Source: Thalia democratica (lineage: Eukaryota). From it: a stretch of DNA of 64,000 nucleotides. Under the pieces are notes generated by a model. The model worked only from the letters and a program-made list of their open reading frames with translations, had not been told where the DNA came from and ran no database searches. The translations under genes were made by a program, and so were the position numbers. Positions 30,756-47,000 of the stretch are shown here, one piece after another. Positions within the stretch are counted from its first letter, which is position 1, and each line of letters opens with the position of its first letter. The stretch is taken from the NCBI GenBank assembly GCA_965202585.1, contig OZ241834.1:30938001-31002000 (forward strand), written 5' to 3'.

Positions 30756-32600
30756 TCAAAAATCTTCATCAAAGTTCTGAGGGATCTTGCACGAGTTCCT
30801 CTCTCTTCCCTCCCTGACCTTCTTCCTTGCCTCCATCGGAAAATACTCCTCGTGCTTCTTGTAGTCGAAGGTCGTCGGAGGGGCGAGCAGTTCCGTGGTG
30901 GAACCCCTGCTCGCGTCACCCAGGTATGACGTCATCAGATCGTCAAAGTTTTTCTTCATTGGGGTTTTCCCCGAAGGCGAGGTGTACTTGAGCACCTCCT
31001 GGCTGCACGGAAGCAGAAGGTCCTCGTCGTCCTCGATCGAATTCATTTTTCTGTTGAATTTTTTTGCTTTTATTTTCAAATTTAATCTTTTACTAAACGA
31101 ATTCGGTCTTAAATAAGCGTCAACCTTGGTTGAAACAGTTTTAATATTTGAGAAATTAATGTTTCGGTATTGTTTTAGCATTTTTTAGTAAAATAAACAT
31201 TTTGTCGATAGCCTAAATTTATGAAAACAAAAACTCAACAAACAACAAAAGTTCTAAATAAAAACTCACCTCATCGATGCGTTCATGACGTCATCGTGAC
31301 GCGACCGCAGCTTACGGTACGACGCGGGTTCTTTAACGGGGGCTCTCCCTCCGGTGGTGAGAAAGTCCTCTTGCGGCGACGTGAACTTGGCCAGCTCCAT
31401 CTGCAGGTGGCGTTTCTCCTGCGCCCTCTTGTGCTTGAGCATGAGCAGGTCGTAGTCGAGGAAGTCGCTGTTCCTGCTCTGCTGTGACGTCACGCTGGCG
31501 CGGTTGGCTTCCGTGACGTCATGGCGGTTGCTGGCCCGCTCCAGAAGGTCGTCGATCGGCTGCAGGAACTGAAAAGTTGTTGTTTTTAGAGCTGAGTTAC
31601 CAATTTTTAAGGTATATTGTGACAAACCTCAGGCATTTCTTTATCCTTGTTGGTGAACTCGTCAATGTGTTGTTTTTCCAAATAGTCGTTTGGGTTCAAC
31701 AACAGCTGTAAAAAATATTGAAAAAGTTTGTATAACTTAAGTATATTTTTTTCTTTTAAACACTTTTAAAGAGACTGAGCTTTTGTCTAAAATAAATAAT
31801 TTTAAACCTTTAAAAAAATCTTCGTTGTATAAAGTTTATGATTTCTTGTTTTAAAACCAAACATTTTTGAAAGCCTTTAACACTTTATTACTTTTAAATA
31901 AATGTAACTAAAAAAAAGTAGTAATTATTTTTAAGTTTTGTTTGTAGCCAGTCACTAAATACTTTGACTGTGTTATTTTCAACTTAATAAAGAAATTAAT
32001 GTCTTTTAAAACACTTGTTTTCACTTAAGTAAAACCTTTTGTTAAACTGCATTTACAAAACTATACTTACGTCGTCATCGTCATTGCTTTTTTTGCTGGT
32101 AGAAGTACTACTTCCAAAATTGTTACTCTGTCCCAAAACTTCGCTGACCGGTCTGAGTAACTGCAAATACTATGTGTTGAAACGTTTATATTTTATTTAT
32201 GTCTTATTTGATCTTACTAAAGAATTTATCTTAAAAGTTTGATAGGTTGAAAGCTTTTACACGGTACAAGTGTTGACCAACTGTGCTAAGTAAAATTTTC
32301 TGCAACAGCATATTCATACCACTTTTGTTTTGAAACAAAAATAGTAAGTTGGTAAAAAATTTGTTGACTTTACAAAAGTTACAGAAAACTGTCCAAACAT
32401 TTTAAATTATTTTTCAAGGTCATGCTTAACGACAAAACCTGGTTGTCTTCTCTTTCGCGTCGATACTTGCTCACGTCATCGTATTTATTATCCGCTAGGT
32501 GGCGCCTTCCCTGGGCCAGCTGCCTCTTGAAGGGCTCCAGCTCCCGTCTCATCGCCCCCAGTCCGGTCAGGGGGCATTTGGCTCTGCGCGGCAGAACCAT
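30756..32600 (-). CDS. Uncharacterised 307-aa protein resembling the titin M-is2 insertion; separate gene with 5 coding exons
   Basis: Exons 32600-32439, 32160-32071, 31705-31628, 31568-31270 and 31050-30756 total 924 nt, are all GT-AG and are phase-consistent. The ATG has a strong context (ACCATGG) with an in-frame upstream TAA. Codon usage is GC-rich like the titin exons. Motifs EREDNQLLRPVSE, DDDDLLLNPNDYLE, FLQPIDDLLE, SYRKLRSRHDDVM and DDEDLLLP resemble titin is2. Confidence 0.85.
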
Positions 32601-34732
32601 GGTAATTGTGATTTATGCGTCTTTGTCTTTGTTTTGAAAAATTAAACCTTACTATTTACATCACCTGTAAAAAATAAATGATTAGTGGCTGGCCGCCATT
32701 ACTGTGAATACACTGGACCCACTTTTTGATTGAGTGCTTTCGTTGACGTCCTGGTACGACTTTTAAACTGATGAGATTTTTTTGAAATACTAACTTGTTA
32801 CACTTACCTGAGTATTATGTATACTTTTCCCTAACCAACATGAAATGGTTTTTGTTGAAATTTACAGTTTTTTTCTGATTATTAAAGTGTTAGATAAATG
32901 CTGCCTTTAAAATAGCTATTAACAGTAAAGTTTGTATAAAATTATCTACAAAACATTTTTTAAAACTATAACTAATATTATACTTCGAAGTTACTAACTC
33001 TATTTAAATATTGTAAAAACTGTTTTTAAAATTAAAAGTACAATTTGTATCAAATAATATTGTAAATCCAAAAAATTATTTCAAAGATTTGTATAATATA
33101 CACTTGATTTATCTTTAATTTTTTAAAACTAAATTTTGTTAATATAATACTTAAGACCTTAACTAAATTTATATTCTACCTAAAATATTATTCAAAATTG
33201 ATCTAATATTTTTATTCTTGTAAGCTTTTACTTTTAAACATATTCTTTACCTAAAATTCTCAATAAACGCTTCAATACTTTACGTAAATAAAGACAACAT
33301 ATTCATGCATAAATAGTTTATTTTTGAAAATGTGCATAAATCTAAAGGTAAATTTCGCATAAATATGAGTTTGCATAATAATTGACTAAGTATGAGTAAT
33401 AAAAACAAGAGTAAATAGATATAAACATAAAAAAAGTGTAAAATATACTAGTTTAAATAAAATATATTGTGGTATTTACAAGAATGTATGGTATATATAC
33501 ATATAGCAACTAAATACAAAAAACTCATGCAAGATATTTACAATTTTTGAGGGATGAATTAAAAGGCACAACATTACCCCGTTTGAAAGCTTTTTGAGGG
33601 AATGAGCTCCTGACGGCATCCTGTATTGAGGGAATGTCGGATGCCGGTCAGTTTCGGGGCTTTTGTTAGTGACAATTTAAATTCGTTTGAGGGGATTTTG
33701 TTTGGGGATTCACCTTTCTGATAAACGTTCTTGAAGTTTAATCAGAGTTTTTTTTTTGTAGCTTTGCGTGTGCTACTTGTTGTATGAAGCATGAATGCAT
33801 ATGCTCATAACTATTCACTTCAGTACTCGAGTTTTTTAGCTTAGAGCTTAAAAAGACTCTTTGAAGTACTGTCACTTGGTTATTTAACCGATAAGTTGTC
33901 AGCTTTGAAAAAGCGACATACTTAGTCGGGTTAATACTGTATATGGTAGATTAAAATTAGTTCAAAGTTTTTAAAATTTATTTGGAATTTCAATTAACTT
34001 ATCAAAAAAAAAATTATTAGATTCATTAAAAAAAGTAAATAAAACATTTTGAGACTCTGTAGTTAGAGTACATAATAAACTTTGCAGTAAAATAATTCAA
34101 TAAATTGGACACGCCAGCTTTAACTGATTGCTTAAAACTTGTATGGTTTACAAACGCTCAAAAAGTATAAATACTTCTCAAGTAGCTTTGAAACATACAG
34201 TTTATTAAGGCAATAAAAAACTGGCAAATTTCCTAGAGTAATGTTGGTCCTGAAAAGTAAAAATAACAGGAGAATTCTTGCACTTGTTAGTTGTGATTAG
34301 TCGTTACACATAATCTTAATTCGTAAAAATGAAACTATAAAAATTTAAAGATATCATCAAAAAAATCATTAATACTAACTTTGAAAATTGAAAAAAAATA
34401 TTAAGTATAATCTAATAAATAGAAAAGTAATAATAAAACTAAACATTAAACATTTTCTATTCTTTGTAACATATATTTAAACTTTAAATCGTTAAACAAC
34501 TACATATACTAATAAAACATTGTACGAATGTTAACACAATCTCTTTTATTAAAAACAAAAATACTACTAAAGTAAAACTATAAAGTTATATTAGTCTAAA
34601 CATTCAAATAAAATGCTAGAGACAGTTACTTCTAAACAAAAAAAAATGAAGTAGAATGATCACTTAATTTGACAGTATAAATAGTTATGCTAGCGCAGCT
34701 AGCTGTAATATAAAACTAAACGAGCACCGTTA

Positions 34733-35006
34733 TGACGTCATAAGAAAATCTTGAAACAGCTGTTTCGACAAGTCACGTGGCGTGACGGCAGCAAAGATCC
34801 AAGAAAAGCCTATGACGTCACAACCGAAGCGAAACTCGATAAAACCGCGACGTGCAGCGAATTTTCAGTGACTCAAGATGCAAACAAAGTTGAAACTCCG
34901 TCGTTGAAAACAGCTGACGTCACAATTTGCCGAGTTACGCTTCAAATTGCTCTAAAATTCGAATGATTGACGTCATTTAAATGACGTTGACGCCTAGGTG
35001 ACGTCT
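34733..35006. promoter_or_regulatory. Cluster of CRE palindromes and E-boxes in the titin 3' UTR / upstream of the is2-like gene
   Basis: TGACGTCA at 34733, 34813, 34915 and 34968. CAGCTG at 34757 and 34911. CACGTG at 34774. TGACTCA at 34869. More TGACG half-sites at 34783, 34982, 34988 and 34999. Confidence 0.5.
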
Positions 35007-38000
35007 GTCGCTTCCGTTTTCGCCGCGAACTTGCAGCTCGTAGACGCCGCGGTCGGAACTCCTCGCGCCGAGGATGGTCAGCGTCGTCTGGCTCCTGGAA
35101 GCCACGATCCTGATCCTCCCCGACTCGTCTCCGTCCCTGAAAGTTATTGAAATTTAAAATTTCCAACCAGGAAACACTAAAACGTGGTTGGGTTTTTGAT
35201 ATTTACCTGAGCTGGGCTCCGTTGCGCGTCCAAACAGCTTGGAAGGGCTGTTGCTGTGACTTTACTGAGGCCGGGACGTTTATGACTTTTCCGCGGCCCA
35301 CTTGAATCTTCGACGGGATCCGGCTGATTTTCGGTCCTGATAAAGCTGCAAAATTTAATTATTTTTTTAATGTTTACAAAAAGCAACAAATTTGTTATTT
35401 TGCTTACGCATATGCGAAGTAACAAGTTTTAGTTATAGGGCTGTTTAAAAGCAATAAGAACTGTTGACCGATAAATTACTTGGTTTACTATTAGATATAC
35501 TTCCTTTAATACTTTTACTATTTAACGATAAACAAAAGTTGCCATCGTATCAAAACTGCTACTCATGCTATGACTTTAATACTTTATACATAATGATGCC
35601 TAAATAAACTAGATAAAACACACTAAAAAACTCTTACTTTTAGTTATCATTTAAAAAAAAGTTCAACTCACGCATTGGACCCTGCCTTTCAAACTCTCTG
35701 CTTATGCTTCTTCTTCTCTGGTTGGGGGAATCCCACTTTCTCATCATGCGGTGGCAGGTTTCCGGGGTCAAGCGCAAGTGGGTGCTCACCTCCTCACCAC
35801 TTGGTGACGCGAACACGCACTCGAACTTTCCCGCGTCTTCCTCGCTCACGTCATCGATGACGAGCGTATGCGTCGGACCGTGACGGGAAGTTTTGTACTT
35901 TTCCGCGTAGTCGCCGCTTAAGTAAGTGTTTACATGAAGACTAAGAATTAAACAAAATTTCTATTTACGTTTATCTAAGTGTTTAAAACTTATAAATGTT
36001 TTTAAGGTACACATTGCATAAGAAAAAAAAAACTTATAATTTTTCTAACATTCAGTATCATATACTTAAACCGAGTATAGGTATTGTGACTTCTAGGTTT
36101 AGGAAAATTTCAAACTAGATTTGAATTGTTATAACTTATCAAAAATACAAAACAATTTTTAACTACCTTGCAACGAGTTGCTGATCTTTGTACCACTGGG
36201 CCGACGAAACGAGCTGGGCGTTCGAAACTGCGCACTCGAGCCGGACGCTTCCGTCCAACTTCAGCTCGTAGTGCAGCTCACTGGTAACTCTCAGCCTTTG
36301 CTGGCTTCTCGGCATTGCAGGTGGCATCATGTACCTAAAATGTTAACAATAAATCTTTAACTTGTATGTTTTTTGTCCTACGTTGTCTGCTATAATTTTA
36401 AAAATCATTAGCTACCAATACTTTAACCGCAATTTTTTTTGAACATTTAACAGGATATTAAAAAAAAAATCAACTGTTTTCAGAAAAGAAAACTTAAAAT
36501 TTCAATATGATGTCATTGAAGTATCAAATCGTTTACAAACATTCAAGCAAACTTTCAAAAACTACCACTATTCAACTATACAGTTTAATTAAAAAACTGC
36601 CAAAATTCAATAAAATTTTGTTAATTTATTAAATAAATTGAAAAACATTCAAACAAACTTTTGCCTCATCTGCCTGGCGGCCTGGTACTGCCTGGGCAGC
36701 ACGGTCAGCGTGAAGTCGCTCACCGCGGTTTCGCCCTCTTGCGTCTCCACCACCAGCTTGTAGCTTCCCGTGTCGCTCGCGTGGCACCTGTTCACCTGCA
36801 TCGTGTGCGCGTCTCCGTGATCCCGCGTCTCGTGCTTGTCCGATGCGTCGATCGCCACACCGTTCCTGATCCAGGTGACTGTAAAGAAAATAAACATGTT
36901 TTAAAACTTAAGAAAAATTGAGAAAAACATATATATTTGAACAATGCTAATTTTTGCATATAAAATAGTTTATTATGAAATTTACAAGTTCCTATCCCTT
37001 AAAAAAATCCCCAGAAAAAAAATTAAAAATAAAGATTTGTTATTTTAAACAACATCAGCTTTAGCACAGTATCAAAATTTTTTTTAATGAAAAGCAGTTC
37101 CTACCTCTGTACGGAGCGGTCGACCTGACGCGGCTGGTGAAGACGGCGTTGTCACCTTCTCCCACCTGCTCGCTCCTCGGCTCCATGGCAAAGTAGACTT
37201 CTTCACTCGCCTCGTAGTAGTTCCTCGACCTGCTGCGGTTGCGTGACGAAGACCTCATCGCCACCTCTTCTCTGCTCGCCTGCCTTGACAGCACTCCGCT
37301 CGGAGGCCTCTGAGGCATTCTGAGCTGTCTGCTCGACGGCCTCAGTTCGACCTCGTTCCTGCTCGACGGTCTCGATCTTACGCGCTGTTGGCTGGACGGC
37401 CTGGATGCAATCCTGGCTTCTTGGTGCAGCCTGCTGGAAGACCTTGCCTCTTGCTGAATTCTGCTGGAAGACCTTGCTTCTTGTTGCAGTCTGCTGGAGG
37501 ATCTCGCTTCTTGTTGCATTCTGCTGGAAGACCTCGCCTCTTGTTGCATTCTGCTGGAGGATCTTGCCTCTTGCTGAATTCTGCTGGAGGATCTCGCCTC
37601 TAGCGCGTAATCTGCTGACCTGTTCCTGGATCTGAGCGTTTCTCTGAAAGGTCTCGAGACCGAACGGCTGCTCGGTGGTCGAGAAGTCGACTGTCTGAAG
37701 GGCAAACTCGAGGGTCCTTCTTCGTAGTTCAACCTAAAATTATTTTTACTGGTTAAAAGCTTAAACCTGGCTAGTAATTTTTATCTAATACTGTTTTAAC
37801 ACCACTACTTTGTTTTCAAAAAATCAATATTCAACGAACCTGTTCGCGTATTCCTGAGAACTCGACCTGAACTCGTTCTGGGTCACTTCGAGCGTCGCCT
37901 TGTCCGACACTTCACCGCAGTAGTTCTTGACCACCACTTCGTAAGTGCCGTTGTCGGCTTGGTGACATTTGTAAATATCAAGAGTGACCACTCCTGTAAT

Positions 38001-41000
38001 CAGATTGATTTGTAACACAAAAATATTTCAATGTTAAAATAACAAAAAAATCTTTTAAAACCAACCTTCTATGTTAGTTATCCTGTATTTGTTTCCGCCC
38101 GGCAGAATTTTCCTGCCGTTCTTGTACCAGCTGATGGTGGGCTGCGGCTTGGCGCGAACGCACGCGCTCATCTTCGTCGTGATTCCTTCCGGCACGACGT
38201 TGGACTTGAGGCGCAGTTGGAACAGCGGAGCGTAGTCTCCCGGTTTCGGCATCACCGGCTGATCCCGGTACTTGGAGCTGGTGAACTCGAGCCCGGACGA
38301 GATGTCCTCCTCGTATTCGTCGTTGTATCGAGACCTGGACAAAAGGTAAGGTTTTTTTTTGTTGCTTATACGCTATTAGCATTACTAAAACCTAAAACTG
38401 TTCTCCATACATATTCGAAAACTAATATTCTTTAACAAGTTTAAGATTATATTAAACATTAAATATAAAGGTTTACTTAAAAAAAAAACAAACCTGCTTA
38501 TTCTTCGGCTTCTTCTGTCCTGCCTCCATTTCTTCTTCCTCTCCTCGTAATCTTCCAAGTCTTCCTCCGACTCGGAGCTGCTGTAACTCCTCCTTCTGCG
38601 CCTGCCGCCTTCCATCACCCTCTGCTCTTCTTCCGCCTGCTCCCTTTCTCGCCTCTCCCGCGCCGCGTCCACCTGCAGCATCAGGTCCTCGTACTCGAAC
38701 GACTTCCTTCTTCTGAAGGTCGTTTCCTCTGCGTATCTCCTCTTCTTCTTCATCAGCATCGCCAGCCGCTCTTCTTCGGTCATAGTCGTCGTCGTCGTCG
38801 TGGTCGTTATCTGCTTGCCTCGGTCATCCGCCTCGTCCGTGAAGTCGAGCGAGCCGAAAGCGTCGGCTTGCACCGGCTCGTCGTCCGGATAACCACGTGA
38901 CTGGATATGCGAGGTGGGTTGCGGGAGGTTGTAGACCTGGGATGCGAGGATCTCGTCCTGAACCTGGTCGCGGTCTTCCACTGATCTTTCGAAGATCCTG
39001 TTGTTGTGAGTAAAAGTTAACGCTGAACTTGATTATTTCATTGTAAATATAAAACAAAAAGCTGATTAGTTACGGCTTCAACCTTTGCTAAGGTTTGTTG
39101 TTTCTTAAATTGCCTGATTACAATAAGCTATCGTAATAAAGATTTTGGATACATGGAGAACTTAACCAAAAAAAAAAAAACTGGTACTAATTGAATCTAA
39201 GTTTAACTTTAATTTTATAGTTTTAAGACTTTCTTATTCTTAATTTGCTTTATCAAAACTAAATTACTTTTTTATCAGCTAAAATGAATATCTTGAAAGC
39301 CATAACTACATGTAAGCCAACTATTTTGATATATTTAAACTTCTTACTTCAAAGGTATGTTTGCAGTCATCGCCTGATCGTGCCTCATCCTGAGGTTTTT
39401 GAACGATCCCACCTTGTCTTCGGCTCCCGCGTAGCGGCTGCTCATCGGAGCGGACAGCTGCCTCGAGACTCTTTGCGAAGATCTCACGTCGTCTTCGAAC
39501 AAGTCCGCGGCGCTGCTTCTGCGTGCTCTGCGAATGCAAAAGTTTTTGAATCTTTTTAAATTAATACTAGTTTAACATTAAGTTTTGATATGTTTATAAG
39601 AAGTTTTATCAATATGAAGCTAAAAGTAGTATTAGATTGTTGTAAAACTGTTTAGAAAATATGCAATTATAGTACAATTTACAGGCAAAATATAATAAAT
39701 TCAATATTGTTGTTTAGCAATGTAGTTCTCAATTACCTTTGATAACCAGAAGCTTGTTTGTTTTCATCGACAATGTCTGAGTAGGAAGGCACATCTTCGG
39801 CCCCTGAACGCAACCAGTCTTGGTTGGAAGCTTCAAATTCACGCAAGTGTGATCTTGAATCCTAAAAAGATAAATTTATTTATCTAAACTCTGTTTTTTG
39901 TGTAAAATTTTGAAAAAGTTTAACATTTATCTTAAAACAAATAAACAATATTTTTAAGTTTTTTTTTTAAGTTATAATTTTTAGCAAATAAAATCAACCT
40001 GGTAATCAGACTGAAGGTTATATTTGTCAATGTCTGGATATTGGTTACTTTGTTCGTCTCTCATAAACTGATTGATTTCTTGTTGCTCTAGCAGTTGACT
40101 GATTGGCGCTAGAATCTGAAGTTAGATTTTAGGTTAATTACTGATTTTATAAATTAAGCTTGTCTGAAACAAGTTTTATCAGTTGACTATTTACCTTTAA
40201 ATAAATCAATTAATTTTTAGATTTAACTTAATGCAAACAAAAATAAGTTTCTAATAAAAAAAATACTGATACTTACATCTAGAGTGTCGTGTTTTTCAAC
40301 ATTTTGCTTGCTCGTTGATGCAAGTCCACGTCTCTCGATGAAACTGTCTATGTGAGTTTGCTCAACTTGTTCGCGTACTGGCTTCGAAAGCTGAAAAACA
40401 AAGTATTTTAAAACTACACAAAAATTTTTATTTTACTTCTTTTCTTAAAGAACTATTTTGTACAATTTTTTTTTATTTAAAAAATTTTCTATATCAATTC
40501 CTTTTTTTTTAGTTATCACTTTCAACATAACTTTCAAATAGATTAATGATCTATTGCGTTGACTGAACTAAGTAGCTGACAAAAGCTTATTAGTATCAAA
40601 AATCAAATAAATAAAACCTCTTCGCTTTCTCGCTGAAGCTTGTACTTGTTGTATTCGTTGTCGTTCTTCTTGACACGTCCCTGCTCGATTTGCATTTTGA
40701 AGGGAACTGTCTGACTTCTTATTTTGCTGATTGTTTTCTTTTGCGGCATGACGTGATCGTGCTTAGAAGGCGGCATTATGACGAAATCGTCGTCGATTAT
40801 TCCGTCTTCCGCGCGCTCGATCACTCTGTTTATTACGTTTAGTTTTAAAATTAGTTTTAAAAAGTATACTTTTAAGCTTATATCCACGATCATTGTATTA
40901 CATTATACGTTAATGACAAAGACTTCTAAATTTCAAGTTTTTAAAACCACCAGTTTTCCAAGCTTATCAAAATTGTGTCAACGAAATACTAATTTTTTTT

Positions 41001-44000
41001 TTATCTCTAAATAAATAAAAACCTTTGTTTCTCCGTGAGTCTTGGCTCGGGCACCGAGTACGATTCGGTTTCAATCTTCACCACGTGCTTCTTCCTCCTA
41101 AAGTCCTCTTCTTTCTCCCCAGCCACCAGCTTCTTGTACCACATCTCCGCCTTGTCGTTCAGCCTCGACTCCCGCTCCTCGACGAAATCTTCATCCTCGA
41201 CTTCTCTCAGGTTGGGGAAGATTTTACCGACCGGCCGCATGAGGAGTTCGTACTCGTCGTCCAACTGGAGCTGCTCCTCCGCGGCCACGATCTTGTCGGC
41301 CAGCTTCGTCGCCTTCTCCCGTTCCAGAAGGTCCGCGTCCTCCTTGCGCCAGCTGGTGGAAGAAAAAAATATATCCTTAATGCTACTGTTTAAAGTGACT
41401 ACTCTTAAATTACAATAAAAAATAAGACTTAAGATTAAACAAAATTGCATGTAAAAAATTTAAGTGAAAGTACTATCTTGTATGTTTTGAAATAAAGTTC
41501 GGAATATTCAACTCACCGTTCGAGCTGACGGTGTTTGTAGGGCAGCACCTTCAGCTCTGCCTCGCACGACACCGACCCCACGTCGTTGGTGGCAACCATC
41601 TTGTAGGTTCCCGCGTCGGGCTGGCAGACGTGGCTGATCTTCATGTGGGCCTTGTTTTTGGTGTCCCACCCGAACGACCTTCTCAGGTCGCTGGAAATCT
41701 CCACCCCGTCCTTGTACCACTTCAGCTCGGGCCGGGGGCTGCCCCTGACGCCGACGCTGAAAAATCCGGTTTCGCCCTCTTCCACGTGCTGCGCGGTCAT
41801 GAGGCGGTGCAGGATCGGAGCGACTTGGTGGACTGGCGGTTCTCTTTCGGCTGTTTGGGAGAAAAACAATACGTTAGTGTTCTGGGTAGTACAGAGTTTG
41901 AATTCGATAGAAGCGTTTACACATTACTTTTAAATTTAATTGTTTTCATATAATTTATCTACGCATTACCATAACTTTTTGAAAACTTTTAAACTTAATA
42001 AACGTCGTATGCTACTCACGCAGAACTTTGATGGCGGCTCTGCACTCGTCTTGCCCGTACAAGTTCCTGGCCACGACCCACACGTGACCGCAGTCTTCAA
42101 CCGAGCAGTTTTGAACGCGCAAGGTGTGCAGGGACTTGTCCGACTCGACAGAGTACTTTTCGTCGTCTTCTTCCTTGTTGATCTCGTGGGCGTTGTGGAA
42201 CCAGCTCACTTCGCAAGGCGGGTTTATTCCGACTGTTGAATATTCAAAAACATTTACTTACCTCTAGATAAAAATTTGTAGCAAGCGTATACATAAAAAA
42301 GGAAACATGTCTTTCTAAAAAATAACGCTGTTTTAGAAAAAAATAGATTTGAAACTTATCTTACCTGCAACAGTAAACGTAGCCGACTCCCCGGCGTACA
42401 ACGTCGAGTCGAACAGCGGCAGCTTGAACTCTGGAGGTTTGTTTCGCGACTTGGCCGAGGCTTTGTTGCGCTTGTCGTCAAAGTACAAGTTTCTCAACTT
42501 TCTAGTTCTGCAAGTTTTATAAATACAGTATATTTTTTAGTTAAAAATATTCAGTGCCTTACAATATTCAATATATTATTTTCTTACCACATATCTACTT
42601 ACCTCGATTCATTATTTTCAAATATTCAAGGTTGAAAACTTACAAAGCTTTTCTTCACTGAAAGTTAACTTACCTCGATTCGTCTTGTACCATCAACAGA
42701 CAAGAGGTTTGGAAGGTGTTTCCGTCAGCTTGAAGCTGACAAGTGTAAACTTCCTCGTCAGCTCGCGACAGGTCTTTCACGTACAAGCTGCAAGATCCGT
42801 CGCGTTTGCTGCTTTCGTACTTTTCTCCCGATTCCAATTCCGCGCCGTTCTTAAGCCTGCATTTTAAAACTTAAGTTACATATATTGTATTTGAAGTACT
42901 TTTTAACATTTAAACTTCGTTTCTTAAAATAGTCAATTAAACAAAGAACTTATGCGAAACGCAAGCTACACTATGCACTTTGCATACATGTGCTTACAAA
43001 ACTGCTTCTAAATCTAACTCTGTTACGTTCTTGAGCCTACATTTAAAAATTTTGATTGTTTCAATAAGATCAATAAGTTTTAAGGTCAAAATTGTTTAAT
43101 TGTGTTTTTTATGCACGTGCTTATAAACTTCTCACCACTTCACGGCGTCTCCCTCTCCGAGGTCCTTCCACAAGCAGCTCAGCTTGACATCCTCGCCCTT
43201 CTTGCCGATGGCGTGCCGCAGCGGCGACACGAGCGGCCTCTCGGCCGACCTGACCGTCTTCGCGCTCGACTGAACGTCCGATTGTGACGTCACAGGCGCC
43301 AGGACGCGTCCCAGGGCGCAGGTTATGTCGTCGCGCGCCTCGCGGTGCCTGCTCCTGTACAGGGAGCGGTGGTACGCGGACGGGATGTTGATGTCTGGTA
43401 GGTCGCATGCGAACCACGGGTGAGAGAGCGCTTCCTGGATCGTCATCCTCTCGCTCCTGTCCTTCACCAGCAGCCTGTTGAATTTAAAGGTTTTGAACTA
43501 ATTGGTGTTAAATTATAATTAAGAACTAATTTAAATTATAGGATAATTTTTTTTCCATGTATTTTATACGATTCAATAACGAAACATATAAAAATAATCA
43601 CTTTTAAAGAATATTGAATGATAATTACTAGAAACTTTATATAATAAGTTCTTTTATTGTAATTTTTTTTATTGCTAAACAACAAACCTGTCGACAAAGT
43701 CCAGAGCTTCATCGGAAACGAGCTTCCACTCGTCTTCCTGAAGCACCACGTCTCCCTCCACCACTTTCTCCCTTATTTCGCCGCGGTTCGAACCGAGGAA
43801 GGGGGAAACGCCGGTGAGGATAACGTGCGTGACGACACCTACCGACCACATGTCGGAGCTTTTGTCGACTTGTCCGCCCGACAACAGCTCCGGGGAACCA
43901 AACTCGGCTCTGGTCAAGTTGATTTTTACGCCTAGAAAAAATAGCTCTTTGTAAATATAATTATGACCAAAGTTTTTAGTTTTATTAGATTAATTTTCTT

Positions 44001-47000
44001 ACATTCGCAACTAAAACATGATGTTTAAATGCAATAAATAGAAATAATTCAAAACGTTATAAAAACTTAGTAGAATAGTTGTTTAAGAGTTTTAAATTTG
44101 TCTCATTGCAATTTATACAATTAGAATGTCAATTAGGTATTAACTACAAAACTTACTTTTGATGTTCTTGATTTCTTTTGAGTTCTCAAGCCCAACAAGC
44201 TTGACATCGTTGTTCTCATCGTCTTGTGTTTTGAAAATTATGTTTTCAGGGCAAATGTCGAAGTGAGCAATGTCTTTGGAATGCAACTCTTGCACACACT
44301 TGCAAACTTGTTCAACCAGTTTTCTGCACAAGTCTTCACTCAACTGCGTCATGAATATTCCTTCCAAAATGTTACCACCGGACACAAACTCGTAAACGAG
44401 TGCAGTTTCCCGATCGCTTTCAAACCACTCGTGAAGTTGCAAAAAACCGGAACTCTGCAGCTTTTGCATCATGGCGATTTCTTTTTGAGCTTTCAGGCTG
44501 CTTTCCTTGCCGCTTGCAAACACCTTGACGGCGAAAGTCTTGCCCGTGCTCGCTTCTTTGGCGCGGTACACTTTGCACTCGTCGCTCAGCCCAAGCACTT
44601 CGAAGAGCTGGTACTTTTCGCGCAACGAGTCCTCGCTCTTTTCGACTTTACCAGCCGAGTACTGTGACGTCACATCGACGAGGCGATCGTACTGGCATCC
44701 CAGCATCTTGTCGTCCTTCGTCATCACCGCGCTCGTCGGTTCCGAGTGCCGGGATTCCCCTCTGGAGTTCTTCGCGATCACCCTGAACCTGTACTCGCTC
44801 CTCGACGCCGTCCCGTAGACGGTGTACTCGTGCTTCGAGGAAGTTCCGTCCCTCGTCCACAGTTTTCCGCCGCTGCTCGACCTCTCGACGATGTAGCTCG
44901 TGATCGGCTTGCCGCCGTCGTCTTCGGGTTCTTGCCACTTGAGGGTGACGGAATCGCTGTCGACGTCGGTGGCGATGACGTCGTGCGGGCGTTCAGGAAC
45001 GTCGCTGACCACCAGGCTGACGGTGGCGCTCTCGGTGCCGTACTTGTTCGTGAAGTCGATGACGTAACTTCCGGTGTCGTCACGCTGTGCGTTGGTCAGC
45101 GTCAGAGTGGTGAAAGAGTCGGTGTCGTGGACTTCCACCCGCTCGTCTTGAGAAATTTCCTTGTCCGAAGATTCGCGCTTCCACTTGATGGCCGGCGTCG
45201 GTTCGCACGAGTACGGAACCTTGATGCTGACCACCTCGTGAACGCGGCACTCGAAAGGCCGAGATCTCGCCTCTTCGGATATCTGCACCTCGGGCGCTCT
45301 CTCGACTCTCAATTCAGCCGCCATCGAGACCGACCCGCCGTGGTTGGTGGCCCTCACCGTGTAAGAGCCCTGGTCCTGCTTCTTCACTTTGGACAGGACC
45401 AGCGAGTAGTTGTTCGCTTTTCCCTCGTGCATCTGCACGCTGTGGGACCCGATTATTTCCGCGCCCAACTTGTACCACTTTATCACCGGCTTCGGGTTGC
45501 CCGTTATCTTGCAGCTCAGCACCGCTTTCTCTCCGACCTTGGTCACGACGTTGTCCAGGTCCTGAACGAACTTGGGGGCCAGCACCGTGATGTCCTCCTT
45601 GGGCTCGACGGTCGCGGAAACCTCGCTCGGCTCCGACTGACCGTGAGCGTTCGCGGCCCTCACCCTGAACTGGTACGAAAATCCCTCGACCAATCCGGTC
45701 ACGTAGAAAACCGAAAATTCTTTCTCGTCCGGCTTCTCCTCGTCGTTGATGGTCATCCAGTACTTGCGCTTGCTGTCGCGCCTCTCTATGACGTAATGGG
45801 TGATGGGGCTTCCCCCGTCCGACTTGGGCTGCCTCCACGACAGCATGCACCCGTCCTTGGTGACGCCCGTCGGAATCGGCTTGCTCGGCGGCTTCGGCAC
45901 GTCGAGTATCTCGCCGGCGACCACCGCAGCCTGGGTCACGGCAGCTTCGGAGGTACCGTAGCAGGTCTGGGCCGAGACCCTGAAGTAGTAGCTCTTGCCC
46001 GCCACCAGGTCGCGCACCCTCCAGTTGAGTTTGGAAGTGAAAGCGGTGACCAGGTCCCATTTGTCGGTGGGCCGCTTCACCGCGTCCTTCTTCTCGACGA
46101 TGTAGCACGAAACGGGAACTCCCCCGTTGTCAACAGGCGCCTGCCACGAGATGAACACGCTGTCGAAGGTGACGCAGTCGACCGTGACGTCTGTTGGCGC
46201 GCTCGGCACGCCGTGCACGTCCGTCCTCAGCGGTATCGAGCTCGCGCCGTGCTTGTTGGTCAGCTTCACTTCGAACGTTCCGCTGTGCTCGCTCCTCGCG
46301 GCCGACTTCACCCGCATCATGGTGAACTCCGACGTGGTCTCGATGCTGCAGTTCTCATTCGCTTCGAACACCTTGCCGTTCAGAGTCCACTCGGCGGCTG
46401 GCTTCGGGTACCCGTAGAACGGCACGTAGAGGCGCATGCTCTGGCCCTGCCTGCACGCGACGTCGTTCTTGTACTTGCCGTCGCGGTCGTTCAGTATCGG
46501 AACTCCGGCGACGATGATCTTCGCTTCGGTTTCGAGGTAGCCAAGCTTGTTGCTGGCGTACAGAGCGTAAACCCCGCCCTCGTGGTCCGTTATCTCGGAA
46601 ATTTGGATGGAGGCGATCCTGCCGTCCCAGTTCACCTTGCACCTGCTGCTTCTCTTCACCTCCCTGCCGTTTCTCATCCAGATAACTTCCGGGGTGGGCT
46701 GGCCGACGACGGAGGCGACCAGGGAGGCCGACTTGCCTCTCATCACCACCGCCTGCTGGATCTCTTCCTCCAAACGCGGCTTTTCGTCGCCGGCGCTCTT
46801 CACCACCACGGTGTCTTCCAGTTTCGCCGCCGGGGATCTCCCGCTCCTGTTGACCGCGAACACCCTGAACTCGTACTCGCTGCCCGAGTTGAGGTTCTGC
46901 ACTTGGTGGCAGCTCTCGAACAACATGTCCTCCTCGTGGCACTGCCGCCACACGGTCATGCTCGTCTCGCGTCGCTCCAGCACGTAGCCCTGCACCCTGC

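Follow-up and report, generated by a model that had tools for sequence, protein, structure and literature searches.

In a 64,000-nucleotide (nt) stretch of the Thalia democratica genome (GenBank assembly GCA_965202585.1, contig OZ241834.1, positions 30,938,001 to 31,002,000; the whole stretch is called the window here, and all features described below lie on its minus strand), a titin gene is followed 2.3 kb downstream by a small gene of five exons and 307 codons. Judged from sequence comparison, is2, a linker in the M-band part of this tunicate titin, contains a real, conserved, exon-duplicated peptide array, and the neighbouring gene has the array in common with titin by paralogy. The explanation that we regard as probable, taken as a whole, is that an old exon-duplicated linker array was partly copied into a free gene, that the exons concerned are constitutive, and that the peptides would have a docking role. 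A preliminary description had grouped nine peptide strings, four in is2 and five in the neighbour, as one motif shared by two separate genes and perhaps tuned in copy number by cassette splicing. All nine strings are present, five copies do start exactly at the first codon of an exon, and the four small exons that were named (114, 117, 90 and 78 nt) have phase 0-0 and AG/GT borders.

The upstream part of the window encodes Fn3/immunoglobulin (Ig) super-repeats and a kinase, whose best PDB match, human titin kinase (6YGN, 2.8e-41), ranks above twitchin. The kinase is followed by three Ig domains, a linker of 525 amino acids in seven exons, four Ig domains and a stop codon at ~34980. Placed between the third and fourth post-kinase Ig domains, the linker is the positional equivalent of vertebrate M-is2. 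Its exons are 41352-41023, 40825-40618, 40390-40277, 40115-39999, 39861-39737, 39527-39348 and 38997-38494, and the Ig exon after the linker starts at 38334. AG/GT is found at every exon border in the models of the titin linker and of the neighbour.

The consensus given in the preliminary description ([DE]-L-[LI]-x-P-[VI]-x-[DEQ]-x-L), taken literally, matches 0 of the 9 strings. A loose regular expression ([LIVF][LIVMSA]xP[VI]) finds 5 sites against 0.15 expected, with the P values of such expressions being inflated because the expressions were fitted after the data had been seen. A 15-column matrix was built solely from other species' copies of the neighbour gene, so that the test was not fitted to the window data. 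In is2 of the window two sites are significant: ILAPISQLL at 16.1, beyond the 99.9th percentile of the maxima of shuffled sequences, and LSKPVREQV at 9.7, higher than the second-best site of any shuffle. ELLMRPVGK, at 2.3, is no better than chance, and DDFVIMPPSK falls outside the top eight. Across six neighbour orthologues, down to 40% identity, invariant positions make up 8/10 of the first copy (R1), 6/17 of R2, 9/17 of R3 and 7/15 of R4, as against 2/20, 2/18 and 2/28 in the spacers. FLQPIDD is invariant in all six, and TELLAPPTT has 0/9 invariant positions and is absent from two distant orthologues.

Matrix scores and orthologue conservation together identify six copies as real (LSKPV and ILAPI in titin; LLRPV, LLLNP, FLQPI and DLLLPC in the neighbour) and place the other three strings (YELLMRPVGK, DDFVIMPPSK and TELLAPPTT) at chance level or among unconserved sequence. 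Instead of about four copies, is2 has just two that are intact, the rest being degenerate or never copies, and of the five counted in the neighbour only TELLAPPTT drops out. The neighbour gene thus appears to keep four good copies under purifying selection, and titin to keep two intact, with the others decayed.

The array is also found in a second titin. P0010, a weak match of the profile search, lies inside a titin M-band gene on metagenome contigs of 5-18 kb (L007-L009) from a short-intron organism, and the linker on L007 was modelled as exons A-G, all with AG/GT borders. Its exons C and D measure 114 and 117 nt with phase 0-0, sizes identical to those of titin exons 3 and 4 in the window, and three consecutive phase-0 exons start with the motif (LLQPVSDFLEQ in C, LLKPVGDYLEQ in D and LLQSVDDYLNE in E), followed by acidic-LLxP boxes in exons F (DDDLLLPVNQDTLTY) and G (EEDDELLTPFSALVMKY). 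The five matrix scores in this linker (25.6, 23.0, 12.4, 6.8 and 5.3) each exceed all 3000 rank-matched shuffles. Exons were compared with one another by Smith-Waterman alignment and z against shuffles. Within L007, the whole-exon alignment of C with D gives z = 16.8, C with E gives 5.5 and D with E gives 4.9. The copies at the starts of exons 3 and 4 of the window titin (T3 and T4) match L007 C and D at z = 8.0 and z = 10.0, respectively, and each other at z = 4.3, and the neighbour copies R1, R2 and R3 match L007 C, D and E at z = 4.6, 8.1 and 6.7. These scores tie the three loci in order, and they indicate that the array arose by exon duplication before the lineages split. Since L007 keeps motif-opening exons of the same size, is2 does contain an old exon-duplicated array, a proposal of the preliminary description that the L007 exons and their five shuffle-beating sites sustain. 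The window titin exons (114 and 117 nt), the L007 exons (114 and 117 nt) and the neighbour exons (90 and 78 nt) each have one motif at the start, and all are of phase 0-0.

Within the linker of the window titin, exon 1 (41023-41352) contains YELLMRPVGK at 41223-41252, unsupported as a copy; its L007 counterpart reads HRMPYTIPEP. Exon 2 (40618-40825) contains DDFVIMPPSK (40762-40791), which belongs to an acidic-FV-x-x-P box outside the repeat family. L007 (9374-9593) has DEEFVAKPLRYK at the same place, and the acidic-acidic-F-V-x-x-P core may be a separate conserved element. Exon 3 (40277-40390; 114 nt, phase 0-0) opens with T3, LSKPVREQVEQTHIDSF (40340-40390), and exon 4 (39999-40115; 117 nt, phase 0-0) opens with T4, ILAPISQLLEQQEINQF (40065-40115). 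Exon 5 (39737-39861), with a phase-0 acceptor, shares its start position with L007 exon E and neighbour exon 4, follows the exon order of L007, and has a putative degenerate third copy, DSRSHLREFEASNQDWL, in which the LLxPV core is lost. Exon 6 (39348-39527) includes the SFKNLRMRHDQAM box at 39368-39406. Exon 7 (38494-38997) is the counterpart of L007 exon G, in which EEDDELLTPFSALVMKY is kept; it has a degenerate acidic-LL box, QDEILASQVYNL (38925-38960), at its start and ends just before the next Ig exon. In the window titin, the third copy and both downstream boxes are without their cores, and the segment lies on a branch of 3.2 changes per site. A further box in exon 7, FEYEDLMLQVDAARERRE (38646-38699), resembles a predicted helix of the neighbour, FLDYDLLMLKHKRAQEKRH (31407-31463), and LEYEELMMHVDQSRKRQE of L007, and these boxes make up a second recurrent module of the linker.

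The 307-residue neighbour protein is, by its alignment and exon structure, a colinear paralogue of is2 residues 146-369, with the motif copies inherited as a block. The two align colinearly in blastp (E = 2e-12), and a profile made from other species' neighbour proteins only scores 50.3 bits on is2 residues 146-369, with a maximum of 9.5 bits over 2000 is2 shuffles. The alignment takes in two boxes that are unrelated to the motif, PFKR-QGR and LRxRHD, and the latter supplies the sole invariant columns across all eight titin and neighbour-family sequences. At least two introns are shared, as those before LSKPV/LLRPV and before ILAPI/LLLNP coincide in residue and phase; the first of these, at neighbour exon 2, has the position and phase of the titin exon 2|3 intron. 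The motif is found in both genes because the neighbour is a paralogue of part of is2, and what had been presented as a motif shared by two separate genes becomes a set of copies inherited together.

Two pairings in these alignments were set aside. MAFFT pairs the tail of titin exon 4 (PDIDKYNLQ) with R3, and this was rejected, as L007 puts the tail in exon D. The second pairing, of the neighbour RHD box with titin exon 6, probably joins one internal repeat to another: of the two RHD boxes in L007, the first is the counterpart of the neighbour box, and this first box is missing from the window titin. Over positions 10001-11093 of L007 there are two SFxxLRxRHDxAM boxes, each then followed by an acidic-LLxP...Y box across a phase-2 intron, and further internal repeats in the form of two YSD(L/I) boxes and two (E/S)(E/D)LM-x-(H/V) helices.

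Searches for known relatives of the family gave the following. Compared with Pfam, neither the neighbour protein nor is2 exons 1 and 7 match any family above its curated cut-off (best E ~0.1, to unrelated families), and a PDB profile search and the ESM Atlas hold nothing related to the linker/neighbour family. Homologous-protein searches gave no matches with the 248-residue central is2 segment or with a 108-residue piece spanning the two small titin exons, in both cases within a length window that may hide longer or shorter fragments. Metagenome contig scans with the is2 segment and with the neighbour-family alignment gave no matches.

The coding exons of the neighbour are 32600-32439 (from the ATG), 32160-32071, 31705-31628, 31568-31270 and 31050-30756. 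Exon 1 (32439-32664) follows a trans-splice acceptor AG at 32666-32665, has the ATG at 32600, and encodes the PFKR-QGR box; the homologous sequence in titin is the 3' half of is2 exon 2, where the homology between the two genes begins. Exon 2 (32071-32160; 90 nt, phase 0-0) opens with R1, LLRPVSEVLG. Exon 3 (31628-31705; 78 nt, phase 0-0) opens with R2, LLLNPNDYLEKQHIDEF, which reads LLRPVDQYLEKQ and LLRPVGDYLEKR in distant orthologues and has lost its proline in one close relative (LLMNTNDYLEKQ). Exon 4 (31270-31568) opens with R3, FLQPIDDLLERASNRHD, and then encodes the predicted helix FLDYDLLMLKHKRAQEKRH and a SYRKLRSRHDDVM box. Exon 5 (30756-31050) ends at the stop codon and contains the conserved R4, DEDLLLPCSQEVLKY (30984-31028), whose counterpart in the L007 titin is DDDLLLPVNQDTLTY, and TELLAPPTT (30870-30896), which is not conserved.

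An mRNA contig from a metatranscriptome (L001, 1071 nt) encodes a protein that is 94% identical to that of the neighbour and aligns in five blocks exactly at the neighbour exon borders; the mRNA comes from a 94%-identical relative, not from the sequenced individual. Nucleotides 21-36 of L001 are a 16-nt spliced leader of the Ciona type, ATTCTATTTGAATAAG, directly before the sequence that aligns from 32664 (the 16-nt leader sequence of Ciona is given in PMC1488885 and PMC7986045). The contig also has in-frame upstream stops and a poly(A) signal, and the genome contains 358 sites of leader plus GT, compared with 0 for the reversed control. The leader on L001, the genomic AG acceptor and the 358 leader sites mark the organism as a tunicate and the neighbour as a trans-spliced gene that has a start, a stop and a poly(A) signal to itself. 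Ahead of the leader, nucleotides 1-20 of L001 nearly repeat part of the gene's own coding sequence (CTGGGGGCGATGAG...), which is most likely an assembly artefact. The true N-terminus of the neighbour, M-x-LPRRAKC (32574-32600), is conserved in distant orthologues (L010:63-110; L011:67-114), whose reading frames in the database begin at a later Met, with in-frame stops further upstream.

A palindromic octamer resembling a cAMP response element, TGACGTCA, occurs 19 times in the window compared with 0.55 expected, with sites at 34733-34975, at 30927, 31286, 31485 and 31514, and at 11 more positions. Four copies lie within 243 nt directly behind the titin stop codon and ahead of the trans-spliced neighbour, and four further copies lie inside the neighbour coding exons. 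Elsewhere in the titin gene, a 30-nt tandem repeat at 37412-37601 (6.3 copies, 85% match, minus-strand coding) encodes a decapeptide array of the SSRxQQEAR type in the next titin linker, which separates the fourth post-kinase Ig domain from the fifth. In the kinase (44165-44600), HFDICPENIIF replaces the usual catalytic-loop motif and the glycine-rich loop is without its canonical glycines, which is consistent with a pseudokinase-like titin kinase.

The RNA evidence for titin consists of assembled contigs from two marine metatranscriptome runs, from a relative 90-97% identical. These confirm the introns 38996>39347 and 38332>38492, on either side of exon 7, and three more between Ig exons. Loose ends in the RNA confirm the is2 joins of exon 1>2 and 5>6, and the joins 2>3, 3>4 and 4>5 are supported by contig depth alone. 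Depth is ~16-44x over the small titin exons compared with ~19-24x over the flanking exons and ~0 over introns, the last of which indicates that the contigs are spliced RNA. For the neighbour family, 13 full-length reading frames derived from mRNA (five sequence clusters) encode 307, 305, 291, 283 or 271 amino acids.

These data bear on the proposal that the array is a splice-tunable module, in which phase 0-0 cassette exons would set the number of binding sites. The exon structure would permit it: the exons are symmetric (114, 117, 90 and 78 nt), so that skipping would preserve the frame; their sizes are kept in L007; and with one copy per exon and the acidic prefix supplied by the upstream exon, skipping would recreate a complete motif. 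Against this, none of the 13 neighbour frames is short by 26-30 amino acids and every exon is kept, the small titin exons are covered like their flanks, and the splice sites are standard, with polypyrimidine tracts and donors of the GTAAGT and GTTGAT types. Among the joints listed for the titin linker there is no joint or loose end that skips a phase-0 exon, at the level of contigs, in which rare isoforms may be missed. The small exons appear to be constitutive, and we consider the cassette proposal unlikely. Human TTN encodes both M-is2 and M-is4 in exon 359 (Mex1), in contrast to the seven exons of the linker here, and only Mex5 is differentially spliced (PMC5123623). As human is2 is in one exon, the multi-exon layout is a tunicate feature and by itself no sign of regulation.

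Other accounts of the recurrence dispense with common descent or with protein function. Independent recruitment of a short linear motif by two unrelated disordered proteins would fit two separate transcription products, the neighbour being equipped with a spliced-leader acceptor, a start and a stop of its own; it is at odds with colinear homology over ~220 residues that includes the motif-unrelated PFKR-QGR and LRxRHD boxes and for which shuffles rule out composition, with the identical intron positions, and with an L007 titin that is even closer to the free-gene family, and its probability is close to nil. That the strings recur by chance in Leu/Glu/Pro-rich disordered sequence is suggested by the three of nine that are at chance level or unconserved and by a literal consensus that matches nothing; the independently built matrix with its shuffles, exon z values up to 16.8 and the islands of conservation contradict it for six copies, and as a general account it is extremely improbable. 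Only slightly less so is the view that conservation at exon starts reflects splicing signals at the nucleotide level. Five copies do sit exactly at exon 5' ends, but the same peptide pattern also occurs inside exons (DLLLPC in the neighbour; DDDLLLPV and DDELLTPF in L007), and codons differ widely between copies and species where residues are kept.

A very doubtful reading would make the copies LxxIxE-type docking sites through which PP2A-B56 is recruited to the M-band. The B56 motif is [LMFI]-x-x-[ILV]-x-E with an invariant Glu at position 6 (PMC10970375), and PP2A is among the enzymes localised at the M-band (PMC7023976). The array resembles such sites in its Leu 1, Pro 3, Val/Ile 4 and acidic position 6 and in its disordered context, and R1, as L-R-P-V-(S/G)-E in all six orthologues, fits fully. 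R1 alone conforms, however: R2, R3, T4 and exons C, D and E of L007 have Asp or Gln in place of the Glu at position 6, position 1 of T3 is Ser, and the conserved part of the repeat runs on to x-Y-L-E-Q, outside the motif. Because most copies break the invariant Glu, the array was not classed as a B56 docking motif. The motif classes HP1 PxVxL, calcineurin LxVP, paxillin LD motif, LC3-interacting region (LIR) and PP1 RVxF were dropped on inspection of the residues.

In the explanation that we favour, descent from one duplicated linker array, the centre of the linker is an old tandem array, with a single repeat encoded by each small phase-0 exon. The repeat would start with Leu-Leu-x-Pro-(Val/Ile)-x-(Asp/Glu)-(Tyr/Phe/Leu)-Leu-Glu-(Gln/Lys), continue with a variable spacer and end in acidic residues, which would serve, across the intron, as the 'acidic' prefix of the following copy, and two related acidic-LLxP boxes would lie further downstream in the linker. 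The segment that begins in the 3' half of is2 exon 2 and extends as far as the first acidic-LLxP box would then have been copied into a free-standing spliced-leader gene that retained the exon borders. In each repeat the proline may cap a short amphipathic helix, and the array may be a multivalent docking site for some M-band partner. A proline-capped amphipathic helix in a disordered chain is a usual form of docking peptide, and the conserved core LL-x-P-V/I-x-D/E-aromatic-L-E-Q/K fits this description. In an AlphaFold2 model from the family alignment, the prolines of R1 and R2 each mark the start of a helix or directly precede it, and R3 is spanned by a helix as well, the sole confident helix being residues 149-173 (predicted local distance difference test, pLDDT, ~90). 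A more specific version, in which the array is a multivalent M-band docking platform that part of the tunicates has 'outsourced' to the small paralogue, which would now bear the constrained copies and act as a soluble adaptor or competitor as the titin copies decay, is speculative and on balance improbable.

Several results weigh against this explanation. The AlphaFold2 model is poor overall, with a mean pLDDT of 56 and a predicted template modelling score (pTM) of 0.17. Because of long branches, a tree for the date and direction of the duplication has no support at the key node, the titin segment being on its branch of 3.2 changes per site. The third copy in titin exon 5 has z <= 1.3 against the other copies, which is not significant, so that it is assigned by position alone. 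The L007 titin is the only other titin orthologue recovered. A profile search of 1.84 billion proteins showed no homology of the linker to vertebrate is2: it gave six matches, the family itself and the L007 fragment, none of them vertebrate, in a library that may omit full-length vertebrate titins. The splicing evidence is at contig level and from a relative, and contigs drop rare isoforms.

Titin Z-repeats are units of ~45 residues, one per exon, that bind alpha-actinin and are differentially spliced. The likeness to them drawn in the preliminary description is apt for the architecture, in that both are tandem short helix-forming peptides in non-domain titin, one per small symmetric exon, made by exon duplication. 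It does not extend to sequence, for which there is no relation, nor to differential splicing, of which none was seen in the array at the level of contigs; moreover, the array lies in an M-band linker rather than at the Z-disc, and its unit is of 38-39 residues with a conserved core of 12-15. The PPAK repeats of titin PEVK, of ~28 residues and each in its own small exon, likewise follow a one exon-one repeat design with symmetric phases in an intrinsically disordered titin segment. Unlike these, the array consists of three tandem exons and two related boxes, and lies outside the spring region; its motif is also another one, in which a hydrophobic core is conserved and a helix is predicted. Vertebrate M-is2 is described in reviews as unstructured and binds FHL2/DRAL (PMC7023976). 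The linker here has the same domain order, from the kinase through three Ig domains and a long linker to an Ig domain. We know of no motif for the interaction of FHL2 with is2.

A free-standing copy next to titin was found neither in the literature consulted nor, outside this family, in the library of 1.84 billion proteins, and there is no free gene within 4.5 kb downstream of the L007 titin. Splice-tuned copy number, the main appeal of the original finding, is unsupported. Titin M-band linkers are usually drawn as featureless spacers; here one such linker carries conserved peptide modules delimited by exons, with a stand-alone gene built from these modules beside titin. A defined peptide of ~12-15 residues and a protein of 307 amino acids could be used in pull-downs and localisation experiments on M-band docking, which are hard to do with titin itself, and the pair of genes would offer a natural case for how pieces of a giant gene become independent genes.

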